In this document: positions 1 to 14,442 of the stretch, one piece after another
Layout: every line of letters starts with the position of its first letter
Position numbering within the stretch: the first letter of the stretch is position 1
Source: Lepidodermella squamata
Taxonomy: Eukaryota; Animalia; Gastrotricha
Assembly: GCA_047495785.1 (NCBI GenBank)
Contig: JBLDXI010000015.1
Coordinates: forward strand, 4,216,001 to 4,280,000
DNA length: 64,000 bases
Reading direction: 5' to 3'
The notes under the pieces: generated by a model
The model's database searches: none
Told to the model about the DNA's origin: nothing
The model's input: the letters and a program-made list of their open reading frames with translations, nothing else
Position numbers and translations under genes: made by a program

Positions 1-1073
1 CGTGGGCAACGTCAAAAGGGGCTTCTTGAACCACAAGCACCAAACTTGCGCGCCCAAACTTTTTTCGAAAATTTAAATTTGATAATTTTTGTTGCAATCG
101 GAACTTTGAACATAGTTGTAATTCATCTTCATAATTTAATCTTATGATAGTTGAAAACTCTTAATTTTATTCCCGCCATTCCGCGCTTTGCTACCTCTGC
201 TGCGCTTTGGTAGGTAGTTTTTTGAGACACCCAGCAGTAGGTCACGCCTATCGCCTATCGCCTACAGCATCCCGACGCCCAGAATGCTGTAGGCGGTGTG
301 GCTCTGTGGCTCTATGGGCACGTCATTTTCGGATTTGGCATGAGCGGTGCATTAATTCACCGTGAGTTCTCCCTAATTACATCAAAATTTGAGACTTTCT
401 AGGTCTCGATAACTTGCTCTGCCGAAGACAGCGATCGTCTGCTGTTTTAACCGTTTTGAATTCGCATTGCTTTTCTAAGAGCATCCTAAATCCTTGTCAA
501 ACACATGATCAACTCCGCATAATTCGCTTGTATGATTTGCTCCTATAAATTAGATTAAAATATCCTCTTTCTGGGCGCATGTTAGTAGCTAGTCTCTTTG
601 CGTCCCATGCTGTTATAATATAGTCTCCTCTGAAATGATATGCTTACCGATTTATTACTAGCTTGTCAATAATTAATTCAACTGGGTTAACAGCAATAAA
701 ACACATTGTATTGTATTGTATTGTATAAGAGATGATTCGCGAATGAAGCTGCCAAAATGTCGAATTTAGTGCCGAACCTGTCGTTAATATTCAACGCTGT
801 GGCCTGATGCTCTTAGAACTAAGTTGTATTCGTAGCCTCCAGCCTCTAGCCTGGAATTCAACATAATGCACAGGTATAACAACCCCCTCGACCTATAAAC
901 ATATACAGTACTTATTGCAACTTCAGTATTTGTTCCGGAATGTTATAGGAACTTATGTGGTATTCTTGCTCCGTGCGCCATCGTGAGCTGCAATTTTTCT
1001 GTAATCTGTTGTAGATCATTAAAGTAAAAGGCTAACAGTGTTATGGCAGCGCCGTGAATATAGAACATTGTCA

Positions 1074-4000
1074 ATGTTTTCGATTGAAAGGCGCGACGTC
1101 ACGTTTACGGAGATTCTTTTTCAGCTATGTGAGAATCGAAATCATTCATCGCTGGTTGCTTTGTTGGAGCAAACCCAAGGTGAAAATGGGAGCAACGAAG
1201 ACATCGTGAATTTAAGAGATCCATCAGGCCAAACACCACTTTACGCCGCTGTTGCGAGCGGAGCCCTGAACTGTGTCCGTGTTTTGCTGGAGCATGGGGC
1301 CGACCCAAATTACGCATGTTCAGCGGCTTATTTTTGTCGAACGCCTTTGCACTTCTGCGCCGCAGAGGGAAGCGCCGTGGAAATTGTTGAGCTATTGCTT
1401 AACCACGGCGCCGAGCCTCTTCTGCAAGACCTTCACGGAGACACGTGCCTAACGTTGGCTAATCGTTATGGCCATTTAGACATGCATAGCCTGATGTCGA
1501 CGTGCTCTGAGCAGCGAGATCAGATGTTTGAACTCATTGTTAATCGTGAGTTTTCTAGATATTGTAGTCAACGGATACTTGATAACTACTTTTTTATTAG
1601 AATTCGAGTCGCTTCTCTTGAATGGTGACATTGACGCGGCAAAGAATTGTTTATTATCGGTGCGCAACAGGAGGCAAACTTTTCTGAAACATCTATCGCG
1701 TCGTTCGCAAGCAATTGTTATCCAGTAAGTACTCTCAATACTAAAGAAATTTGACGACATCTCCGTTTTTCTTATAGGTGCATCGAGCGTAATCTCGCCG
1801 ATTCTGTTCGATTACTGGCCGACAGTGGCATCGACTGCATGTCAATAATCATTGAGCCTAATGGAGATAATGTGCTGCATTGCGCTGCTAAATTCGGTGC
1901 TGATAAAGTTGCCGTTGTAATACTTGAGCGATGGCCGTCTTTGTTCTGCCGAACCTCTGCTCTTGGTCGATTGCCGCTTCACGATGCTTGTGAACGTGGC
2001 CGTGCTAGCGTAGTTCGGTTGTTTCTTACTTATCAAAACTACCCTCGTTCCATCGTGGTGACTCAACAAAGTCCTTATGGCTGCTATGAATTTCCGATAG
2101 ATCTCAATCATGTCGACGCCGATAGTCGCACGGCATTGCTAGATGCCTGCTCTTCCGGCAGCGTCGATACGGTGAAAGCTCTACTTGATGCGAAATTTAC
2201 ATCAGTCGGCTCTGGTTTCGGCAACTTTCAGATCCCTATCATCCATTCGCCTTCTGTGAACGAAACACCTGTTGGGAGTTTATCAAATTACGTATCGAGT
2301 TTATTCAAACGGATGCGAGTTCCATCAACGAATGGCAGCAGTACTGGCATTCCATTTTCTCACAGTTTCCAACTTGGCGTTGGAGGAGCCTTGGCTACTC
2401 CGAACAGCTCGAGTCGTCCTGTCAGGTCTGGATCGACCATTTCTTTGGAAGACCGGTCGATGCAAGGGGCATTCAGCGATTTTGAAATCGTCTCCCCTCA
2501 GCCTAAGCCAACGAGTCCAGGAGGCGTGTTCAATCCGATCGATTTGAACGTGTTTTCCTACGATCGCGTAACCCCGTTATTGGCAGCTATTCGAATTCAG
2601 AATCGTCAAATCGCTGCATTGTTGTTACAATCAGGCGCTGATCCGGAATTACCTGCTCAATGGCGGGGTTATACTGTGACACCGCTACACGCCGCGGTCG
2701 AACTTCGAGACGGCGAATTGGTTGACTTACTCCTTCAATCGGGCGCTATTGATAACGATTGCGCCGCTTTGGAAAGCGCGCTTAGATCCGCCCCTCATTT
2801 AGTTCCGGTTTTTCTCCGTCGGTGGAGTGAAGTTGATCGGGAAGTTCAGATTAACGTGGACTCAGTCGCTGAATTGGCCGAGCTGAGTCGCTGCAAAACT
2901 GAAAGTGTCGTTCCTGTCGCTATCAACTGGAGGGCGAAACCTCAACTTCGGGATTTGCCTCAAGCCTGGCTTGTAGGCTGTGCAATCTTTCACAATCCAG
3001 CGTTATTACTCGACGATTTTGTCGCCTGCTCCGTTATTACTCGACTCGATATTAGTGCAAATGCTCTTCGATCATTGCCTAGTTATTTATTCCATATGCA
3101 AAGTTTACAAACTTTGAATGCCGCGTCTAATCAAATTGAGGAAATTACGTCCGGAGGAATTCAGCGGACTTTTCTATCGTCCTCGCTTCGGGAAATCGAC
3201 TTATCATTCAACAGATTACAAACTATTCCTGCTTTTATTTTTTGGCTCAAACGCCTTAATAAGTTATACGCCGATAACAATATGATAATGTCCCTACCAT
3301 CAGATCTATGGGAAAATACTTCTTTAGCAGAGTTGAAGTTGGCGAATAACCGCCTGGAAGGAGTTCCAGTTAAACGACTCGGTCGAGCTGCTATTGCGAA
3401 AATGACAATTGAGGTGCAATCGAATCGCTCATCTGAGTCGCCATCAAACAGTCGGGGGCAGCAAAAAACGCATCGAAGCACACCGTCAGATGCCGGAAAA
3501 GAGCATTCAGAACTTCAACAACACGATTTGTGGTCACTTGAGCTGTCATCCGACGTCGGGGTTATAGCCGATGATAATATCGGGGGAATTCCGAACAATG
3601 CCGGTGACGCGAATGCTCAGCCGAATTGCTGTGCCATTCGATTCTTAGATTTGTCGAATAACCATCTAACGATTGTCCCATCTAGTTTGGTTTGCTTAGC
3701 GCCATTGTTGCGGACTTTGAACCTGTCGCAGAATCACATAACATCCATATCGCGTTGGCCGGCTGATTTCCCGCCATCGCTGCATACTTTGGATTTATCA
3801 AATAACAAGATCAGCGCCTTTTCCGGAAATATGAATGACGATTCATTGCAGCGAAAACCGTCGAGTGATGTGATTCTGCCGTGCTCGAACCCGGTTCAGG
3901 TTACAGTCGAACCCGATGAGAGGGCTCGAAGTGTCACTAGACCTGACTCTCGCCGCGTCAGAAGCCGGTCTTGTGATCGCAGAAAGGGATCAGAAGGCGA

Positions 4001-7000
4001 GCGAAGATTCGCCGCCAGTTGTTTACATCGTCAACACACGTCTCTGATCAGACTTCGAACATTAAATTTAGCGAATAATGGCATGACAAGTTTCGTGTTT
4101 GAATCATCCACCGCGCCTGGAATCACCCAGCTTGATTTGAGTTCGAATAAATTTACAGCGTTGCCACAATCGCTGACTCAGCTGCAAAATTTGTCGGTTT
4201 TGAACGTGTCAAACACTCTGATAACAACACTTCCACCTGAACTGTCCCGCCTGAACCGGCTGTGGAGTCTTGAAATATCCAACTGCCCGTTATCAGGCGA
4301 ACTGGGCGCATTAGCTCGAGGCAAAGTAAGAACTGCTGACATCATCTACCACTTGCGGGCATCATTGGACAGGGCCCGTCTTCGGCCTATAACTCGGCTA
4401 TTGGTGTGTGGCTTTCCAGGTTCTGGGAAGTCGAGTTTGATCGACGTGTTGAAACGAGCTGCGAGCACTACAACGCCCCCGCCAGGGCATCAGAATAACT
4501 CGGATTTGTCTCAGGTAAAATTGATTTTCAATTTATCGTTATATAATTCCAATTTCGAGGCGTTCTCAGTATAAAGCTGAAAGTTCGCTAACTTAATCTT
4601 TGCAGCTGTACATTTTTTAGCTGTCAGAAATAATTTTTTTTGAAGATTTCGAGCTCCTGAAATTGATACCGCATTTGTTCCAATAGCAGCCCGGGCTTCT
4701 AAAATTTCAACCTCAAAATTTTGAAAAATTCGAAAATCAATTTTCGGCGAATCGCTCATTTTTTATGTTTTCGAACCGACTTGACCCATCAACCCTGGGC
4801 TACTAGTGGAACACATACGGTATTAAAAATAGAAAACAGCAATGATGTTTTTTGGCTGGGTTTAATCAAGCGAACAAATGTTGATTTTATCGAGTTTGCT
4901 CGTGGTGTAAACATGATCATCTGAATTCATGGCCATCGCTTGTGCGTCAATGCCTGTTATATGAAGCCACAATTGAAAATGGCTGTAATTTTACCGTGTT
5001 GATAGTGTCAAATTGAGTTTGTGAAGTTGTAATTGAAAATTTAATACGCGCTAGCGAATGTTCAAAACTCGATAAAAAAATCTATACCTGATACATCGTT
5101 CAGCTGTGGCTAAGAGAATAATAATGGCTACTCAATATGGTGTAAAATTTATGAGCCAAAGGCCAGTTTTATGCGCAATTCCTATTTTTCAGCTGCTCAA
5201 CTGCATGTTTTTTGTTGCAAACAGACGAACGTGATAAGAATGCGAAGTTACATCACGTCGAGCGCGTGTTTTTATTTCACATTTGTCTCAAACAATTTTT
5301 TCAAGTTTTTTGAATGAAGATGAATGATGATAACGACAATAACAGTATTTATATAACCACGAGAAATTAGGTCTCTACTTTACAGACTGAAAGCATGGCA
5401 CATTTGAAAAGGTAAATATATTATAGCGATAGAAATCCAGTTTGAGATTCGTACTCACGTAAATTTTGGTTTATATTAATGCGAAATAGTGGTACAAAGT
5501 TGTATAGTTCGCCGCCGCTATAATAAGAAGATTATGACTCGAAAAACACATGACGCGGCGCATTATGAAGAGTGGCCAAATCAGCGAAATGTCCCTCGCG
5601 CTGTTGTTGAAATGATACGAAATGAGTGAAGCAAACAATAAAGTAAAAATAGCTAAAAATTTAGCGTTAATTGTCGATATATCACCAAAGCCGCGACGAT
5701 TAAAATCGTCGTACCAATGGCGATGGCAAGTGTTGAGAGCAGCAGACTTGCGGCGTGAGTGATTCTTTGCCGTTTCGATTCTGAGTTATTTTGGCACGCG
5801 AGGACTAAACTGGGGATGGCGAGCGGCAGGCAGCCGAAAACTAGCGATATCAGCGCGTAGCCTATGGCGAATCGCCGTTCGCTTTTCGTGATTTCAGGCC
5901 GGAGGACAGCTCCGTTCTGGAAAACGAAGGGCACGTTGCGTTGTAAATACGCGGCATAATCATCGCGAAAGTTGAGAAATTGCAAGTTCGACGTTGATTG
6001 AACGCTATTCCTCGAGGCCGATTGCTCGCCGCTGCGACTCTTCTTCAAACTAGCCAGCGAGTGGTAGATGACGTTATTCGTTAAGGTAGCACCTTTCTCC
6101 GCAGGTGGCGGCCGATTGTTGTTCAGGTTGAACGTGACTGAATAAATATTTTCGTTTTGCGATATCCGAGGTTGCGGCTGCACTATTTGCGGTAGCGCAT
6201 TTTTTGACGCGTTTTCGATATTCATGACAGGGAAGTGAAACGGGTTGGTGATGAATGCGCTAGGTATGTTCAACACCTCCGTGCTACCTGCTATTACGGC
6301 CGTTTCATCATCGCGCTCGGCCATAGGTAGGTAATAAAAAACACGGCACTCGATTCACCTAGAGGTAAGATAATAAGATGTTGCGATAAGTGCTTAGTGA
6401 AAAATGATTAAAAACAGCCGTTAATGCAGAGGTTTTTTGATTAAAATTTCATGTAAACACGGACGGTTGCTGGTCAAAAATAAATCCTCGAGTTGATAAA
6501 TTGAAGCGGTAGAAGAGCGGGTGACTTAGTGTGTATGTGTTTTATAAAAAGGAAAAGCACCCGAAATTATTAATATAAAAATGAAAACATAATTTGAAAT
6601 GGCGCTGGGCGACTTAATTCTACTACCTGTGCTGCAGCGTGTATTATTTTTCACTTGAGAATAAACGAGCGCGTTGAAAGGAGATTCGGGCAACCGACCG
6701 GACGACGCGCTAACAGCATAAATAAATAGCGCGCGGCCCTATTATAGCGCTACCTTAAAATATCGCGCGCGCGCGAGCGACAGAACGTGTTTGCGTCGTT
6801 CTTCGTCGAAAAATCGATGCACACGCGCGTAGACAAACAACTGGCGATGATGATGATGTTGATGGACAGCGATGCCAGTTTGGCCGGTTAATATAAGCAT
6901 ATTGTTATTACACGAGCCTTAAAGTCGCAAAATATAGAGACGTTGCGTTGGGGACGACGAACAGCGGAACTTCATTTGCTTTTTAATATAACAAGTGTTT

Positions 7001-10000
7001 GTTTCGACCCTCAGGTAAAAATTTGCGCCCGTCGTTGTCGCACTTGAGATCCCGCAAATAGCAATTACGACCGAGTGTTGACTCGGTTGTCGATAGGCCC
7101 TATCCGATATAAATTCATCGCTTTAATATTTTTTGTTTTCCTCTTTGCAGCCGTTAATCGATTGGGGCCAGCTCGCGGTGGAATTTCGCCCTGAGGGTCC
7201 TCTCACCTTCCGCCTCGGTGAACTGTCCGGCAAGCCTGACTTTCGATATATCGGCGCCAATTTCCTTACTCAACGATGTGTTGTTCTGATCACTTTTCGC
7301 TTGACCGACTACCCTACGTCGCAAATAGTCGACGCGCTGGCCAGCTTCGTACGCGATATCAACCTACTCATCCCATCAGCGCCGGTTCTTATCGTCGGAA
7401 CGTTCGCCGACGTGCTCGCCGAGAGCGTTCTCGAGAATGGCTCAGCTGATATGATGCCAATTTGGCGGCGAAAACTGGCAACTGCCTTTCAAAACGGCGA
7501 CCCGACTTCGATGTTGAACTCATCAACTAGTTTCAATTCGAGCGATATGCTATTTGACGTGTCCCTAAATAGCGCTGAGGCTAGTGATTCTGAGGTCATA
7601 TTACCTGGAAATTGTAAATTGATGGTAGTTTCGACGACGAAAAATCGGAAAAAGAACGGCAACCATTTGCTGCGGGAAGTTCATAGGCTAGCTTTCGAGT
7701 GGCGGGGTGGGTTGAATTCGCAACGAAACGCGACGCCTGGCCAGGGCAGCTACCAAACACCACCCACCTTAAAGCAAACAGTGCCGGCGATTTTCGCCGA
7801 TACTGAAAATGCGGTGAATAAATTGGCGCAAAGTTTACTGAACGCCAGATTGCCGCCACTCTTAGCCGGCGCGTTCTTCCAAGAGGCGGTGAAACAACAA
7901 CTGACTGAAATGAATTTGAAAACGTATCGAGATTTAGACGAACTCAATCAATGCGTGCGTTTCTTGCATGAAATCGGCATAGTCGTGCATTTCGACGAGC
8001 CGTCCGTTGCTGATTTGTACTTTCTAAACGTTCAGTGGTTGTCGAGATTACTCGCTGATGTAATAGCTAAAGCTGTGAGTGACCCGGCGTCGCCACGCCG
8101 CGGCCTTTTGGCCTTCGATGATGTGGTTCAGGTGCTAAATAAGCATGAACCAACCGGGGTTTTGACTCAGAATAAGTTCATATCACTACTGGCCCGCTTC
8201 GACGCTGCTTTTTCATGGGACGGTGGTTCCCATTTGATAGTACCAGGCTTTCTTCCAACCGTTGAAGACATCGATGGCCTTGTGCTACCGCTGAAACCTG
8301 TCCCGCAAGCACACCGGCCTTCGATCCGGCAGTCTTTATTAGAACCCGAAGTTGAAAGTAATAAGCAGTCGGATGAGTTAAATAATTCACTAGCGAACGA
8401 TTCAGACGCGTTTGCTTTCGATTTGAATCGGTTTTACCTCATCAATCACATTCCGTTGAATTTCTGGCCTCGTTTAGCCGTCCGTCTTCTGCCTTGTGAA
8501 TTATTAACCGAAATTCTGTCATGTGCCGACGAAAAATCGGGTCACACCCCCGCGCCCGTTGTCAAGCTATGGGACACCCGTATCGAGTTGTTCACGTCAG
8601 AATCCGCCAACAGCCCTATCATGATTGTCGAGCAAATCGATCGGCTGCATTTGAGACCTGGCAACCCGAAATGGAGTTTGTCCCTGAATGGGCAAATGTT
8701 GTGGACAGTTTCGAGTTCAGTTTCGCTGATATCGATCCGGGTACCCTACTTGGCCAAGTCTAACCTCGGGGTTCGGCTGATGAGTCTGATCACCGAATTT
8801 ATCGATCAATTGCTGGAAGATTGGTACCCGGCTATCGGCAGTAGATTCGCTCAGGATACGCTAGGATCTTACCTGGTCTACCGCCTCGTACCCTGCTCGC
8901 ATTGTTTTGCCGGCGACGATCTAGCTCTGGTGCCGTGTTTTCTGCTCGAGGAGTGCATGGCTGCGTCTTGCCCATTGAGCCAACCCGCATCGACCCCGAC
9001 AAATACCGAACCTCCATCAACAGCCGGGTCTTTGTTATGTCCGAAGGGTCACACCCTCGACATATCTTCAGCAGCTCCTGACCTAGTTTTCGCAGACATT
9101 CCGAAATCTCAACTCGTCGACTGCGCTCAATTCTTGGAGAAGGCCTCCTTACTAGGCTGCGGAGCTTTAGGCCCTGTTATCTCGGTATCCCTCGCGAAAT
9201 TGCAGCTACATGCTCGAAAATCAGCCCTGTCTAACGCTCACTCAACAGCCGCCGGTCAGGACATGTCGTTTTTCTTGCCGCGATCCGGTTCGTTCAACTA
9301 CCACCATCCGTCGAAAAGCGTCGCAATCAAGTTCTTCAACCCAGTCGATATCGATTTGACATCAGTTAGCGGCCCGGTCACGACCGCCCAAGGTTTGGGT
9401 GATCAGTACCGCCGCCTTAACGATCAGTTGCGGCGGCGTTTTAAGGCGGATCCTGTTCGATTGGCCTGTGAAGCTTATACCAGCGCGAGGCAGGAGCTAT
9501 CGGTAATGCTTTGCCTTAGGCACGCTCATATCGTCGGTTTGGTCGGCGTTTCACTGAAACCCCTCGGCCTGCTTCTTCAGCTAGCCCCATTAGGGTGTCT
9601 ACTCGATTGGCTGCAGTCGTATCGTAGAGTTGGCCAGCAATTGACGTCGAATACAGTGGTTCAGGTGATAGCTCAGCTGGCTGATGCGGTCGCGTATTTG
9701 CATCGAATGGGCGTGATCTATCGTGATTTGAAGTCTTCCAACATTCTGGTGTGGCGTTTCCCGCGACCAACTGCTGTTTCCAACGCTCCGAATGCTTTCA
9801 GTGACGTGCCCTCGCCCGCTGAATCGATGTCGAGTGTTCAAATTCGTCTATCAGACTTCTCGATAGCGAGATGGTCGGGCGGGTTCGGTTGCCGGGGCCA
9901 GGCGGGAACGCCCGGGTTCATGGCGCCTGAGGTCATTCAATACAACGGGGAGGAGACTTACACGGAAAAAATTGATTGCTTCTCGTTTGGAATGGTGGTT

Positions 10001-13000
10001 TATGAGCTGTTAACGCTACGATTGCCATTCGAAGACCGGCCGAGTGTTAATGCGAGACATGCCGTTCTCGCCGGGTTGCGGCCACCCCCTACCCTAGCTA
10101 TGTTCACGTACGGCCAGATTTTTACTGACCTAATCGCGGCTTGCTGGCGCAAAGACCCGGCTGGTCGGCCGTCGGCTCAAGATATCTTGCGACTAGCAAA
10201 CTGGCCTGGTATGACGCGAGTTGTTTCGATTTCGTCGATAAATGGCATTCCTGAGCTGTTGTACACTGCGCCTATTCCGCAACAGGCCGGGACCCGTGGT
10301 GCTGTTCTTGCGAGGTATAACGTGGCTGAAAATCGAACGCACATCGATTCGATCGGCTTCGACGGTGATGAGTGCTTTCAGCTGCAGCATTTGGCTGAGC
10401 ATCCACCTCGGGAGAATGCTCCGCGCAAGAATTCGAGAAATTCAAGTCAAACTGAGTCGCAGCAACAAGTGATTATGGTCACGTGTCTCACCATGTCTGC
10501 ACAGCTTCTATTCACTGCTGATATTGCTGGGCTGATTCATTGCTACCGGTAAGTGATAAAATTTAAATTCTTGGTGATCAAACTGAGTACCGAACCGAGG
10601 GATGTTTGTATCGAAACGTTGGCCATTGTAGGTAATTATAATCGACAAATTAGCGGCTTAATTTTTGCAATTTCGAGTCATTATTCTCAACATTTCGGGT
10701 AGATGTTATACCGTAGTGGCCATCGTCAAGCGATAAGCTACCAAACAATCAGCAAATAGATGGAGGCATCCTTCAAAGGTTTCCTTCAAAGTTTCACGTG
10801 CATGAACCCCTTAGGTTCTGAAAGGACGAAATTCTCGTAAATCGCACCAAGCGCGACAATGTTTCCGAAATTGATTATCACCAGGTCGGCGTCATCAGCA
10901 AAGGGCTTCGTTAGGATTCCAAGATGCCTGCAAACTTCTACCACCGTTCTATTATTCACAAGTAAAAGAAACTACTTCCGCGGTGTGCACAGTTTCTGAA
11001 AGTTCTTCAGGATCTTGTGTGTTTTTGTGTGAGGTTCTGCAAATTCGGCAACAACAAAACCCTCGATGAAAATGCGCTCTTGTTCATAGCGTGCAAAGGC
11101 ATAATTGCGACATTGCATTTTAACCATAAAATCCATTATGCCATCAAGAAGAGGAATGTCATCTGCTAGAAATGCAATCTCCACACATGAAGCCTTATTA
11201 GCAGGAAAACTGGATACTCGCTTGGCATTAGTTATTTTAGCACCGCAAGGCTGGAAAAGTACATCATTTTCATCAGCGGAAATTTGAAAGCTCGGAAATG
11301 CTGATTTTTCTGTTGTCTGCAGTAGCTTTATTTCATAACTGAACAGGTTGACATTAGTCAGTATTCTCATCACTTCGTTCACATCCCAAAGGAAGTAGTC
11401 GTCGCTGTCAGGATTGTTGGTTGCGTAAACGCGACCGGTGTCGTCTCCAAAGAAGCAAAACCCCTCTCCGCTGGCTTGATTGACAGCGAAGCCGCCGATA
11501 ATGTCAATCTTACGACCAAAAGCCCACGGAAAGTCCTTTACAAGAAATCCTTTTTTGGCGAAGAAAGATGACGCGGCTTTGACCGGATTTCCCGACGTGA
11601 TCTTGTGAACGTGAAGATGTGATCTTCCGCGATTTCGACAGTCTCGTTCTCCAAGAGAAGTGTCGCCCCCTCGAACGTTCTGGCAAACTTGGCCCATTCA
11701 AGGCCCTACATTCGGCAGGCTGTATAAATGACAAAAAATGACAACGAGTTGAAGCCCTTATCCTTCAGTGTATCTTACTCACCAACGCGACAACCCGATG
11801 CTTTATCGACGATTTCGCATGTGGTCATGAGTGTAAGACGGCCGTCCTGGGTGACTGCATTTTTCGTAAGGGAAACGGCCTGTAATTCGCCAATGACATT
11901 CACGCCCTTCTTACTGCCGGTCGCGAACAGCTGACTGATGCCTTCAAGGATAGGCCTATGCTTAGGCAGGAAGTACGTCATTACAGCCGTCATCGGAATG
12001 TCCTTAATCACCAGCTCAGGGTCATCCTTAGCTAGGCGAAGAATTTTGAACGGGTATTGGGTCACGGACGCCTAGGACGCCCTTGTTGGCAGTGGGCCGC
12101 TGTTCCGAGCTGAAAGTCCAGATTGATGGGAAATAAGCAGACTCGACCCTTTCAAGGTTGGTCGAGTATAAGATCGCCGGGAAGCGCGCCCCTGGCAATG
12201 ACGGAGTTGTTACCAAGTTTCAGCTATTTGAATTCCAGAACAAAAAAAGCATACCTAAAATAATTATTAAGGAATAATGCAGAAAAGAGTTGTTTCGGAG
12301 TCTCTGTACCCAGCTGACAAAAATCGCCTTGATTTCGAAATTTCGATCAGAAAATAGGATTCTGAGATATCAGGAAATCAAATAATATATTTCCGTTTTT
12401 TTTTTTACTTTAGGATAGCAAGTGGTGAGTATCTTGGCTGTGTGCCGGCTGGGCGAACCGGTTGTCACGCTATTTCCTTATATTGCTGCAACGAAAGTAG
12501 CCAGCCAAACAATACGAACACCTTGGACACGCCTCGAATCGCAGCTCCTTCAGACGCGGCAACGGCGAGCCACGATACCCTGCTGGCGTTGTATAGCAAC
12601 AGTTTGCTTGTGGTTTTAAGCGCTTCAGCCAATGCTAACCCTGTTCTGGCGCCGATCAGGCGCTTCGAATTGGACCCTGGCAAAGGCACAGTGTGCTGCA
12701 TGGCCGTCATCCGGAGAATGGGCCACGCGATGCCAACAATCAAAGCCCCACCCGCCCCGGGGATGAAACCATCACCATCGAAGCGAGAAAATGGTCTTTC
12801 GTCGAAAATCAGCATTTTCGAAAAAAAGTTTGTTCGAAGCTTTGATAATTAAAATGAATTGAATATACTTTAATAATGTACTAACTTCAATTCAGCAAAG
12901 CTCTGAAAGAATTCGTGGATGATATCAAGTTAATAGCTAGCTAAATCTTTGCTTGTTTTTAAATGGTGACGGGAAGTGCTAGATGATTCCGTCGTGCGTG

Positions 13001-13851
13001 TCTCACCTCGTGCTTGTAAAAAAAAAAGGTGGCGGTTATCACCGTGTTTAAAACAGCGTTTTTCGTAGAAAATCATGCGATTATTTTGCTATAAATTTCA
13101 ATATTTTTCAGAACTTCTTCAACTAAAATCAAGTCTTTCTTCACACGCCCTGCGTCGCCTGAAGAGTCGGAAAATTGCGGCCCGGGTGTCAACGAATTGT
13201 GGCTCGGGTGTTTCGACGGCAGTATGCTGCTGTGTTCGCCGAAATCGCTGACCACTCCGACAAGACTTCGCGCGCCATCGCTAGCCGGCAGTAAGGACAG
13301 CCAACAGGCGCCACCCATCGCGTCCCTAGTCACAGATTGCGCCTCTGAATCAGTATTTGCCACGCTCTATCTGTCTAGCATTGTCTCACGATGGAGCGTC
13401 CGCCAACGAGTATTACTCGCTCATTTCGATTTTGGAGAGCAGGTAAATTTGGGATATTAACAAAATTGATTAAAATTGAAAATTAAAAATTGAAAAATTA
13501 ATTAAAATTAATAATTAAAAAAATTAAGGTGGAATTTTTAAATTTTATTTTCGTACTCAGATAACGAGTATTTTGCCGCAAAGTTCGCGCCTGCTTCTCG
13601 GCACAATAACCGGTTGTGTGATATCGTCCGATCTCAGCACGCTGAGGCCGTTGAATTCTTTCCCGCTGCACGCCGACTCGATTCTTGCCCTGCTGCCCAT
13701 CGGCGCGAATCAGCAGCAGCTGCCGGACGACCCGGCTAATCAGGACCTGGTGGTCTCGCTCGGCCGCGGTCTTGCCGAGCCACTTGCCGGCCTGCTGGTC
13801 GACGCGGCGCCACCGTCGCGCATGTGCGTCGTTTCTCTGAGTTTCTCATAG
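1074..13851 (+). CDS. LRRK1: Leucine-rich repeat Roco kinase, LRRK1/LRK-1 type (ANK-LRR-ROC-COR-kinase-WD40-like tail), 7 exons
   Basis: Exons joined by eye via GT-AG: 1074-1545, 1601-1724, 1778-4514, 7151-10548, 12414-12827, 13112-13442, 13561-13851. Ankyrin repeats (GQTPLYAA, RTPLHFCA), LxxLDLSxN repeats, P-loop GFPGSGKSS, COR motif FWPRL, kinase motifs VAIK, YRDLKSSN and GTPGFMAPE. Confidence 0.9.
5653..6324 (-). CDS. CD225/dispanin-like (PRRT1/IFITM-like) membrane protein nested in LRRK intron 3
   Basis: 223-aa single-exon ORF with a low-complexity N-terminus, then two hydrophobic segments: ALISLVFGCLPLAIPSLVLA and ASLLLSTLAIAIGTTILIVAALVIY. Confidence 0.6.
   Translation of the reverse strand: MAERDDETAVIAGSTEVLNIPSAFITNPFHFPVMNIENASKNALPQIVQPQPRISQNENIYSVTFNLNNNRPPPAEKGATLTNNVIYHSLASLKKSRSGEQSASRNSVQSTSNLQFLNFRDDYAAYLQRNVPFVFQNGAVLRPEITKSERRFAIGYALISLVFGCLPLAIPSLVLACQNNSESKRQRITHAASLLLSTLAIAIGTTILIVAALVIYRQLTLNF
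10787..12216 (-). pseudogene. Disrupted multi-exon orphan gene nested in LRRK intron 4
   Basis: Coding-like ORFs 12216-12028, 12065-11775 and 11697-10972, plus a further in-frame exon near 10948-10787 after a short GTAGTT...AATAG intron. A frameshift near 12070 and an in-frame TGA just before 11697 break continuity. Confidence 0.45.
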
Positions 13852-14442
13852 CGACTGAAATGTAACAAAAAAGAACATTTTGTGTGAGTGTGATATCAAA
13901 TTTGAAAAATACTAATAATTTTGTTGCCGCGTACCGATATTTTTTCCGCTCTAGCTGCGTGTTTGACCGATTGTTTTACTAGCATCAATAATAAAATTGA
14001 AATGTTCCTGATCTTTCCCAGTGTCATTCCCTAAAATACTATTGTTGCCTTTTCCAAATAATTTCGAAAGAAAACGCTTCTAACTTGCTTCAACGCTTCG
14101 GTCGTGGTACTGTGAAATTTCTTTACTCAAGTCATTATGATGAGTTTTTACCTCTCGATGAAGAGAACTAATTCTTGCAATTTAGCTGATTTGTGAAATT
14201 TTTATCATCGTGAGTGAATGAATGACAACTATTGAACACAAGTGTTATTTTACGTTATTAAATTGTGCTGTTTTTGATACGTATGAGATCGACGACTCTA
14301 AAATGATGACAATCAGAAATCCCAGTATATATTTCAACTTTTGAATAAAAAACGGAAAGGTTTTACAAAATGCGCTTTTATTTCACGAAATCACGGGTAT
14401 AAACAATGGTAAAAAAACTGTTCCAGAAAACGACGAATGTGA

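Follow-up and report, generated by a model that had tools for sequence, protein, structure and literature searches.

A gastrotrich LRRK-family kinase with a remodelled, non-canonical ROC domain

We analysed the gene for a LRRK-family ROCO kinase in a 64,000-nucleotide stretch of DNA from the gastrotrich Lepidodermella squamata (contig JBLDXI010000015.1, positions 4,216,001 to 4,280,000; hereafter the window, to whose first letter all coordinates refer unless stated otherwise). The ROC domain, which is the most conserved domain in the family, was found to be the most deviant domain in this lineage. It lacks the canonical switch residues and keeps the motifs that hold a nucleotide, and its altered form is common to an ortholog from a second lineage. 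We hold with moderate confidence that this ROC folds, probably binds nucleotide and has lost the canonical switch, and that it would cycle poorly or not at all and serve mainly as a structural partner of COR-B.

A single large gene lies on the plus strand within positions 1–14000 of the window. By its domain content the product is a LRRK-family ROCO kinase with ankyrin repeats, leucine-rich repeats (LRRs), ROC, COR, kinase and a beta-propeller. The greater part of ROC, the two parts of COR and the kinase domain are encoded by one large exon, for which human LRRK2 and LRRK1 were the best solved relatives by sequence (~130 bits each with HMMER). We identified an ortholog on the metagenomic scaffold L001, which is syntenic with the window, with a RasGAP gene upstream and histone genes downstream. 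Its protein, P0001, has 59% identity to the window protein over the large exon. In an exhaustive search of representative sequences, P0001 scored 1416 bits and the next best match scored 176 bits. A word search with the large exon returned P0001 only, the same search with the ROC/COR-A piece returned no match, and scans of metagenomes for further close orthologs also returned no match. All statements about the lineage in this study rest on these two sequences. Beyond the ortholog, the best matches to a ROC-COR profile were from Trichuris trichiura (P0015), the moth Eumeta (P0016) and Angiostrongylus (P0041), with scores of 172–176 bits, and for most of the remaining matches in the representative search the best-matching stretch began at COR.

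Divergence of the ROC domain and its motifs

We measured conservation against 50 LRRK representatives other than the window protein and its ortholog, aligned with MAFFT (FFT-NS-i); family counts below refer to these representatives and are given over fewer sequences where a column is gapped. Columns identical in at least 80% of the representatives were defined as conserved, and the ROC counts refer to the downstream part of the domain. The window protein kept 14/32 of the conserved columns in ROC, 22/34 in COR-A, 20/24 in COR-B and 46/53 in the kinase (Fisher p = 2.5e-4), and its value for ROC was below that of every other representative. The mean identity of its ROC core to the representatives was 25.6%, compared with 50.5% among the representatives themselves, the lowest of which had 33.6%. 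The corresponding pairs of values were 29% and 33% for COR-B and 36% and 38% for the kinase. The two exons between which ROC is divided were scanned one at a time with Pfam, and the same piece was cut from canonical LRRKs as a control for this division. The downstream ROC pieces of three canonical LRRKs scored 57–70 bits to Pfam Roc, whereas those of the window protein and its ortholog scored 11.5 and 17 bits to Ras, below the cut-offs.

By these sequence measures the divergence is beyond the lineage background and specific to ROC, with COR-B and the kinase being typical. A preliminary description of this DNA had proposed that the whole ROC-COR module was degenerate, and had named the general divergence of a fast-evolving lineage as an explanation that would undo the proposal. 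The conserved-column counts and the mean identities rule out such background divergence. COR is not degenerate either, given the family-conserved columns that COR-B keeps.

The elements of ROC that hold a nucleotide are present. The G1 motif, or P-loop, reads GFPGSGKS (4410–4433) and has the GxxxxGKS pattern intact, as had been described; the ortholog has GFPRSGKS. The G4 motif reads GTFAD (7397–7411; TFSD in the ortholog) and keeps the Thr and Asp that are found in 50/50 representatives, with Phe in place of the usual His. These residues had been read correctly but taken as degenerate, and this second part is ruled out, since the third G4 residue is Phe in 5/50 and Tyr in 3/50 representatives and a Pecten LRRK2-like protein itself has GTFAD. 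A G5-like motif, STTK (7631–7642; SNAK in the ortholog), was aligned with the family pattern [SN]C.K, a short and loosely defined motif, and is preceded by a lineage-specific insert of ~40 aa between G4 and G5. As a separate observation on the P-loop, both loci have Pro at the position of Ras G12 and LRRK2 T1343 (4416–4418 in the window; 7408–7410 in L001), the latter being a phosphorylation site of LRRK2, and in the ortholog the Ras G13 position is occupied by Arg.

The switch elements are altered throughout. At the switch-I Thr (LRRK2 T1368), which is Thr in 43/48 representatives, both proteins have Gln, encoded in the window by the codon with which the upstream exon ends (4512–4514), and the family motif TVG[IV]D is replaced by Q|PLID over the exon junction. 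No Ser or Thr near this position is conserved between the window and L001. The equivalence was read from contiguity at the conserved junction because MAFFT --addfragments misplaced the short upstream-exon fragments. The G3 motif and start of switch II read LGELSGK (7214–7234), in which HMMER placed lgELSG on vwDFAG of human LRRK2. Both proteins (ELSG in the window, EISG in L001) have Glu at the G3 Asp (LRRK2 D1394), a residue that is Asp in 48/48 representatives. The Trp before G3 (W1393; Trp in 47/48) is Gly in the window and Ser in L001, the Gln after G3 (Ras Q61/LRRK2 R1398; Gln in 47/50) is Lys and Leu, respectively, and the Tyr1402 position (7244–7246; Tyr in 43/49) is Arg in both. The earlier observations that LGELSG (7214–7231) stands in place of WDFxG and that a switch-I Thr is missing were thus confirmed, with Glu on an otherwise invariant Asp and Gln on the Thr in both loci.

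Of the five G motifs, the window ROC has G1 and G4 and lacks two, namely the switch-I Thr of G2 and the DxxG of G3. A count over ten key positions (10/10) is descriptive, as these positions were picked after the residues in the window and L001 had been seen; the unbiased measures are the conserved columns and the mean identity. Protostome LRRKs of the Caenorhabditis elegans LRK-1/Drosophila Lrrk type have the same domain order as the window protein and the same conservation of COR-B and kinase. Most of these relatives have a canonical ROC with TVG[IV]D, WDFGGQ, NIQARAP and GTHxD, whereas the window protein and its ortholog keep none of the first three.

We then compared the two lineages with each other. 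The identity between the window and L001 was 60% for the ROC core, 55% for COR-A, 59% for COR-B and 69% for the kinase. The nonsynonymous divergence (dN) was 0.33, 0.42, 0.36 and 0.27, respectively, and the synonymous divergence (dS) was saturated. A decaying ROC is ruled out, as the ROC core is as conserved as COR between the lineages and dN is far below dS. The canonical switch residues are lost, but the term degenerate does not suit the domain in the sense of decay, as it keeps G1, G4 and the G5-like motif, has a predicted G-domain topology in the modelled part and has a dN no higher than that of COR. Because the changes are shared, dN is low and the synonymous sites are saturated, the remodelling predates an old split, with the new form held by purifying selection.

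Hotspot positions and the ROC:COR-B interface

The preliminary description had also pointed to three positions at which pathogenic LRRK2 variants are known. The C-terminal end of ROC helix alpha3 reads DINLLI (7355–7372), in which Asp, Leu and Ile occupy the positions of LRRK2 N1437, R1441 and A1442, respectively. HMMER alignment to the solved human LRRK2 and LRRK1 chains placed DINLLIPSAPVLIVGTFAD on NIKARASSSPVILVGTHLD, by which the D corresponds to N1437 (7355–7357) and the L to R1441 (7367–7369). In COR-B, the segment NHIPLNFWPRL has His at Y1699 (8447–8449), with NHIPLNFW aligned on PYFPMGFW. Among the 50 representatives, the N1437 column contains 37 Asn, 6 Ser, 4 Thr and 2 Ala residues, and Asp is found in the window and L001. 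The R1441 column is Arg in 46/50 (Leu in the window, Lys in L001) and the A1442 column is Ala in 46/50 (Ile and Val, respectively). The Y1699 column contains 38 Tyr and 6 Phe residues, with His in both the window and L001. At these positions, the ortholog carries every change of the window protein, except for Lys rather than Leu at R1441 and the Val at A1442. The Trp equivalent to LRRK2 W1791 at the end of a COR-B helix is retained in both lineages (8822–8824; hidslmeeWfpgl on fidqlledWypai).

The HMMER alignment with LRRK2 from G3 to G4 has one two-residue gap, which lies upstream of helix alpha3, and Y1699 was placed by a separate short match; the G3 motif and the hotspot segments themselves aligned without gaps. 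All of the hotspot columns were recovered alike in the MAFFT alignment with the 50 representatives. The Asp, Leu and His thus stand with their coordinates and alignment as first described, and the proposed comparison with LRRK1 and LRRK2 produced no shift of these positions, which would have spoken against them.

Structural work on LRRK2 has R1441 capping the COR-B helix at W1791, Y1699 docking on ROC alpha3 and R1398 in contact with T1368, and the contact between ROC and COR-B is believed to be loosened by mutations at N1437, R1441 or Y1699 (PMC8863276, PMC10317166). The LRRK2 allele N1437D is linked to Parkinson's disease, with kinase activity and GTP binding increased in homozygous mice (PMC11953335), and R1441K alone reduces GTPase activity in isolated human ROC (PMC12889809; bioRxiv 10.1101/676627). 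The window protein and its ortholog have the same residue, Asp, as the N1437D allele; however, N1437D in human or mouse stands alone in an otherwise canonical ROC, whereas the Asp of the window protein is fixed together with many other changes. In human LRRK1, the native residues at the R1441 and Y1699 sites are K746 and F1022, and of the LRRK1 mutations K746G, F1022C and G1411S only the first is activating (PMC7886321), so the effects of hotspot substitutions are context-dependent. LRRK1 therefore has neither Arg at the first site nor Tyr at the second, the ortholog likewise having Lys at R1441, although LRRK1 retains NIEAK and GTHLD, unlike the window protein. Given these native residues of LRRK1, a difference in a hotspot residue alone is not evidence of uncoupling.

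Human LRRK2 (PDB 7lht, 6vno, 8fo9 and others) has the architecture, the YRD catalytic loop and W1791 in common with the window protein. Relative to LRRK2, the window protein has the changes T1368Q, W1393G, D1394E, R1398K, Y1402R, N1437D, R1441L, A1442I, Y1699H and G2019S, together with the G4–G5 insert. The last of these substitutions lies in the kinase domain, where DFS stands for DYG (9854–9862); this natural G2019S-like Ser was identified by alignment and is common to L001, whereas Gly is found at the DFG glycine in 48/50 representatives. The kinase scored 92.6 bits against LRRK1 and 65.3 bits against LRRK2, and it has the motifs by which catalytic competence is judged, namely VAIK, YRDLK, DFS (with Ser at the DFG Gly) and APE. 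In a separate observation, two LRRK-like proteins from the representative search that look unrelated, P0153 (Logan assembly) and P0155 (ENA), have lost the switch-I Thr and have a non-aromatic residue at Y1699 and Ser and Asn in place of the DFG Gly. This hints at a possible correlated evolution of the GTPase switch, the interface of ROC with COR-B and the DFG motif, the independent cases of this type being too few for a co-variation test.

The fold was predicted with AlphaFold2 for the product of 7151–9106, which comprises ROC without beta1, the P-loop and alpha1, plus COR. The model had a predicted local distance difference test (pLDDT) score of 82 and a predicted template modelling (pTM) score of 0.84, and its elements follow the order expected for a G domain (beta2-beta3-alpha2-beta4-alpha3-beta5-alpha4-beta6-alpha5). 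Asp69 and Leu73 of the model, at the N1437 and R1441 positions, are at the C-terminal end of alpha3 (helix 57–73), and His433 is located just before a short COR-B helix. The G4–G5 insert was predicted to be disordered (pLDDT <50, residues 118–145). Foldseek returned LRRK2 and LRRK1 as the top matches with E ~1e-19 (2e-19 and ~19% identity for LRRK2), and COR also matched a C. tepidum Roco protein. The template modelling (TM) score was 0.59 to the active-like LRRK2 structure 8fo9_A, 0.56–0.58 to 8fo7 and 8u7h (with type-I inhibitors) and 0.50–0.53 to inactive full-length structures; this edge for the active-like state is too small to lean on and may be an effect of the predictor.

Gene structure and the intron within ROC

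The intron that separates the P-loop from G3 extends from 4515 to 7150 on the plus strand, begins with GT and ends with AG, is in phase 0 on both sides and is found at the same position in L001. The junction sequences are cag|gtaaaa at 4514, with the donor GT at 4515–4516, and ttgcag|ccg at 7151, with the acceptor AG at 7149–7150. The preliminary description had allowed that an exon missed within this intron might restore switch I and G3. However, G3, alpha3, G4, G5 and COR are all within the single downstream exon, and no missed exon could restore G3 because it lies inside this uninterrupted exon. In a six-frame comparison of the window and L001 introns, no conserved plus-strand coding was found. 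The sole conserved coding region is on the minus strand (tblastn E 8e-52) and corresponds to a nested antisense gene. The spacing from the P-loop to G4 is 117 residues, compared with 104–127 in relatives without a large ROC insert and up to 140 in those with one. On these results for the two loci, we reject a missed exon.

The nested gene (5653–6324, minus strand) encodes a small membrane protein of 223 aa and is not part of the LRRK gene. It has a weak CD225/dispanin match and 53% identity to a gene located equivalently in L001 (7849–8571), and its C-terminal membrane region is conserved. A 22-base element at 6783–6804 is identical in both loci, ~460–480 bases upstream of the start codon of the nested gene, and is a candidate for the promoter or for a 5' exon of that gene.

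The remainder of the LRRK gene is also on the plus strand. One or more upstream exons with ankyrin repeats lie at 1080–1725, as indicated by tblastn to L001 4123–4767 (50–63% identity) and by ankyrin repeats in the translation of the open reading frame (ORF). The exon at 1839–4514 encodes ankyrin repeats and LRRs (Pfam Ank and LRR) and the first part of ROC, comprising beta1, the P-loop, alpha1 and the first half of switch I. Here 1839 is the ATG of the ORF and not a mapped 5' end of the exon; the match to L001 starts at 1773. LRRK2 residues 1220–1357 align to the end of this exon, and the P-loop Lys falls on K1347. The large exon (7151–10549, the 3' end being approximate) has 1133 uninterrupted codons that encode the remainder of ROC (aa 1–200), COR-A (201–375), COR-B (376–655) and the kinase (656–1025), with Pfam matches to COR-A and Pkinase. 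COR adjoins ROC directly, and COR-A scored 45.2 bits against a Pfam cut-off of 35.3. Exons for the C-terminal beta-propeller were located at 12397–12828, 13104–13451 and 13534–13848 by tblastn to L001, with a weak Pfam Beta-prop_LRRK2 match. Between the kinase and the beta-propeller, a segment of ~1.85 kb (10550–12396) parts two LRRK coding pieces that adjoin in L001. It contains minus-strand ORFs at 10972–11697 (241 aa) and 11775–12065 (96 aa), neither of which has a Pfam match, and may represent an insertion into the intron that is particular to this lineage, a further nested gene or a mobile element.

Interpretation of the remodelled ROC

In the reading that we favour, ROC was remodelled long ago in this lineage and has since been held in its new form. 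The predicted G-domain fold and the elements that hold the nucleotide have been retained, namely Lys and Ser of the P-loop, Thr and Asp of G4 and the G5-like Ser..Lys, and those that sense the gamma-phosphate or serve hydrolysis have been lost, namely the switch-I Thr, the G3 Asp, the Trp before and the Gln after G3 and the switch-II Tyr. The ROC:COR-B surface has changed on both sides, in alpha3 at the N1437, R1441 and A1442 positions and in COR-B at the Y1699 position. Such a ROC would bind nucleotide and serve mainly as a fixed partner of COR-B and not as a timer, with the kinase, which carries the natural G2019S-like Ser, being governed by other inputs. The uncoupling of the kinase from GTPase control that the preliminary description had proposed is plausible as a hypothesis.

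Rnd proteins and RhoH, examples of small GTPases and pseudo-GTPases that bind nucleotide without cycling, are G domains of a comparable kind, in which the fold and the nucleotide-binding motifs are kept and catalytic or switch residues are replaced. They still have Thr in switch I and Asp in G3 and have lost other catalytic residues, whereas the window protein has lost both the Thr and the Asp, and has done so inside a ROCO kinase.

Several points weigh against this reading. Glu could in principle replace the G3 Asp, another residue could contact magnesium, and the interface changes on both partners could compensate for each other without loss of coupling. Lys and Phe at two hotspot sites are compatible with function in human LRRK1 (PMC7886321). 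The comparison is limited to two lineages, the evidence for the splice junction 4514|7151 is its conservation between the two loci, and the structural model covers a partial ROC, with beta1, the P-loop and alpha1 outside it.

In the main alternative, which is possible but less likely, ROC would still operate as a GTPase switch through unconventional motifs, the interface would have co-evolved and be compensated, and the kinase would still be under GTPase control. The conservation of G1, G4 and the G5-like motif in both lineages would fit such a switch, as would purifying selection on the ROC core equal to that on COR, the changes on both sides of the interface with retention of W1791, the partner of R1441, and the replacement of Asp by Glu, which keeps the charge. 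The native K746 and F1022 of LRRK1 point in the same direction (PMC7886321). However, the G3 Asp is invariant in the other representatives (48/48) and the switch-I Thr is found in 43/48, four further switch residues have been lost together, no Ser or Thr is conserved near the switch-I position, and R1441K alone impairs the GTPase activity of the human ROC (PMC12889809).

It is unlikely that ROC is a nucleotide-free pseudo-GTPase that acts as a scaffold only. The failure of Pfam to recognise the domain and the absence of the switch I and switch II consensus would agree with this, but GxxxxGKS, TxxD and S..K have been kept across two lineages with saturated synonymous sites, and it would be difficult to account for the retention of these motifs, despite the saturation, if no nucleotide were bound. 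A gene-model artefact from a missed or alternative exon, for which the 2.6 kb of intron between the P-loop and G3 would leave room, or a decaying gene is very improbable, given that G3, alpha3, G4 and COR-B are in one 1133-codon exon with a conserved phase-0 donor and acceptor, that conserved coding in the intron is confined to the antisense strand, that the spacing from P-loop to G4 is within the family range (117 against 104–127) and that each domain has a dN far lower than its dS.

In a more speculative reading, the GTPase timer would have been retired and the kinase would be held in an active-like state by substitutions of the Parkinson's type, namely an exact N1437D, the loss of Arg at R1441 and of an aromatic residue at Y1699, and the G2019S-like Ser. 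This reading is doubtful at present; if it were true, the window protein would be a natural, selectively maintained LRRK with all of the hotspots changed, and its other changes would show how such a state is tolerated or compensated.

The value of the finding is comparative and hypothesis-generating. The hotspot residues are not surprising by themselves, as human-pathogenic residues commonly occur in distant orthologs. In a narrow literature search, we found no paper describing a LRRK with such a remodelled, non-canonical ROC. How ROC controls the kinase is a central open question for LRRK2, and the known activating mutations of LRRK2 cluster at the ROC:COR-B surface that is rewritten in the window protein. 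A natural LRRK with an ordinary kinase and COR-B and a non-canonical ROC kept by selection is a comparison protein with which one may ask what role ROC has beyond GTP cycling, which combinations of residues tolerate changes at the hotspots, and whether the ROC switch and the DFG glycine co-evolve.

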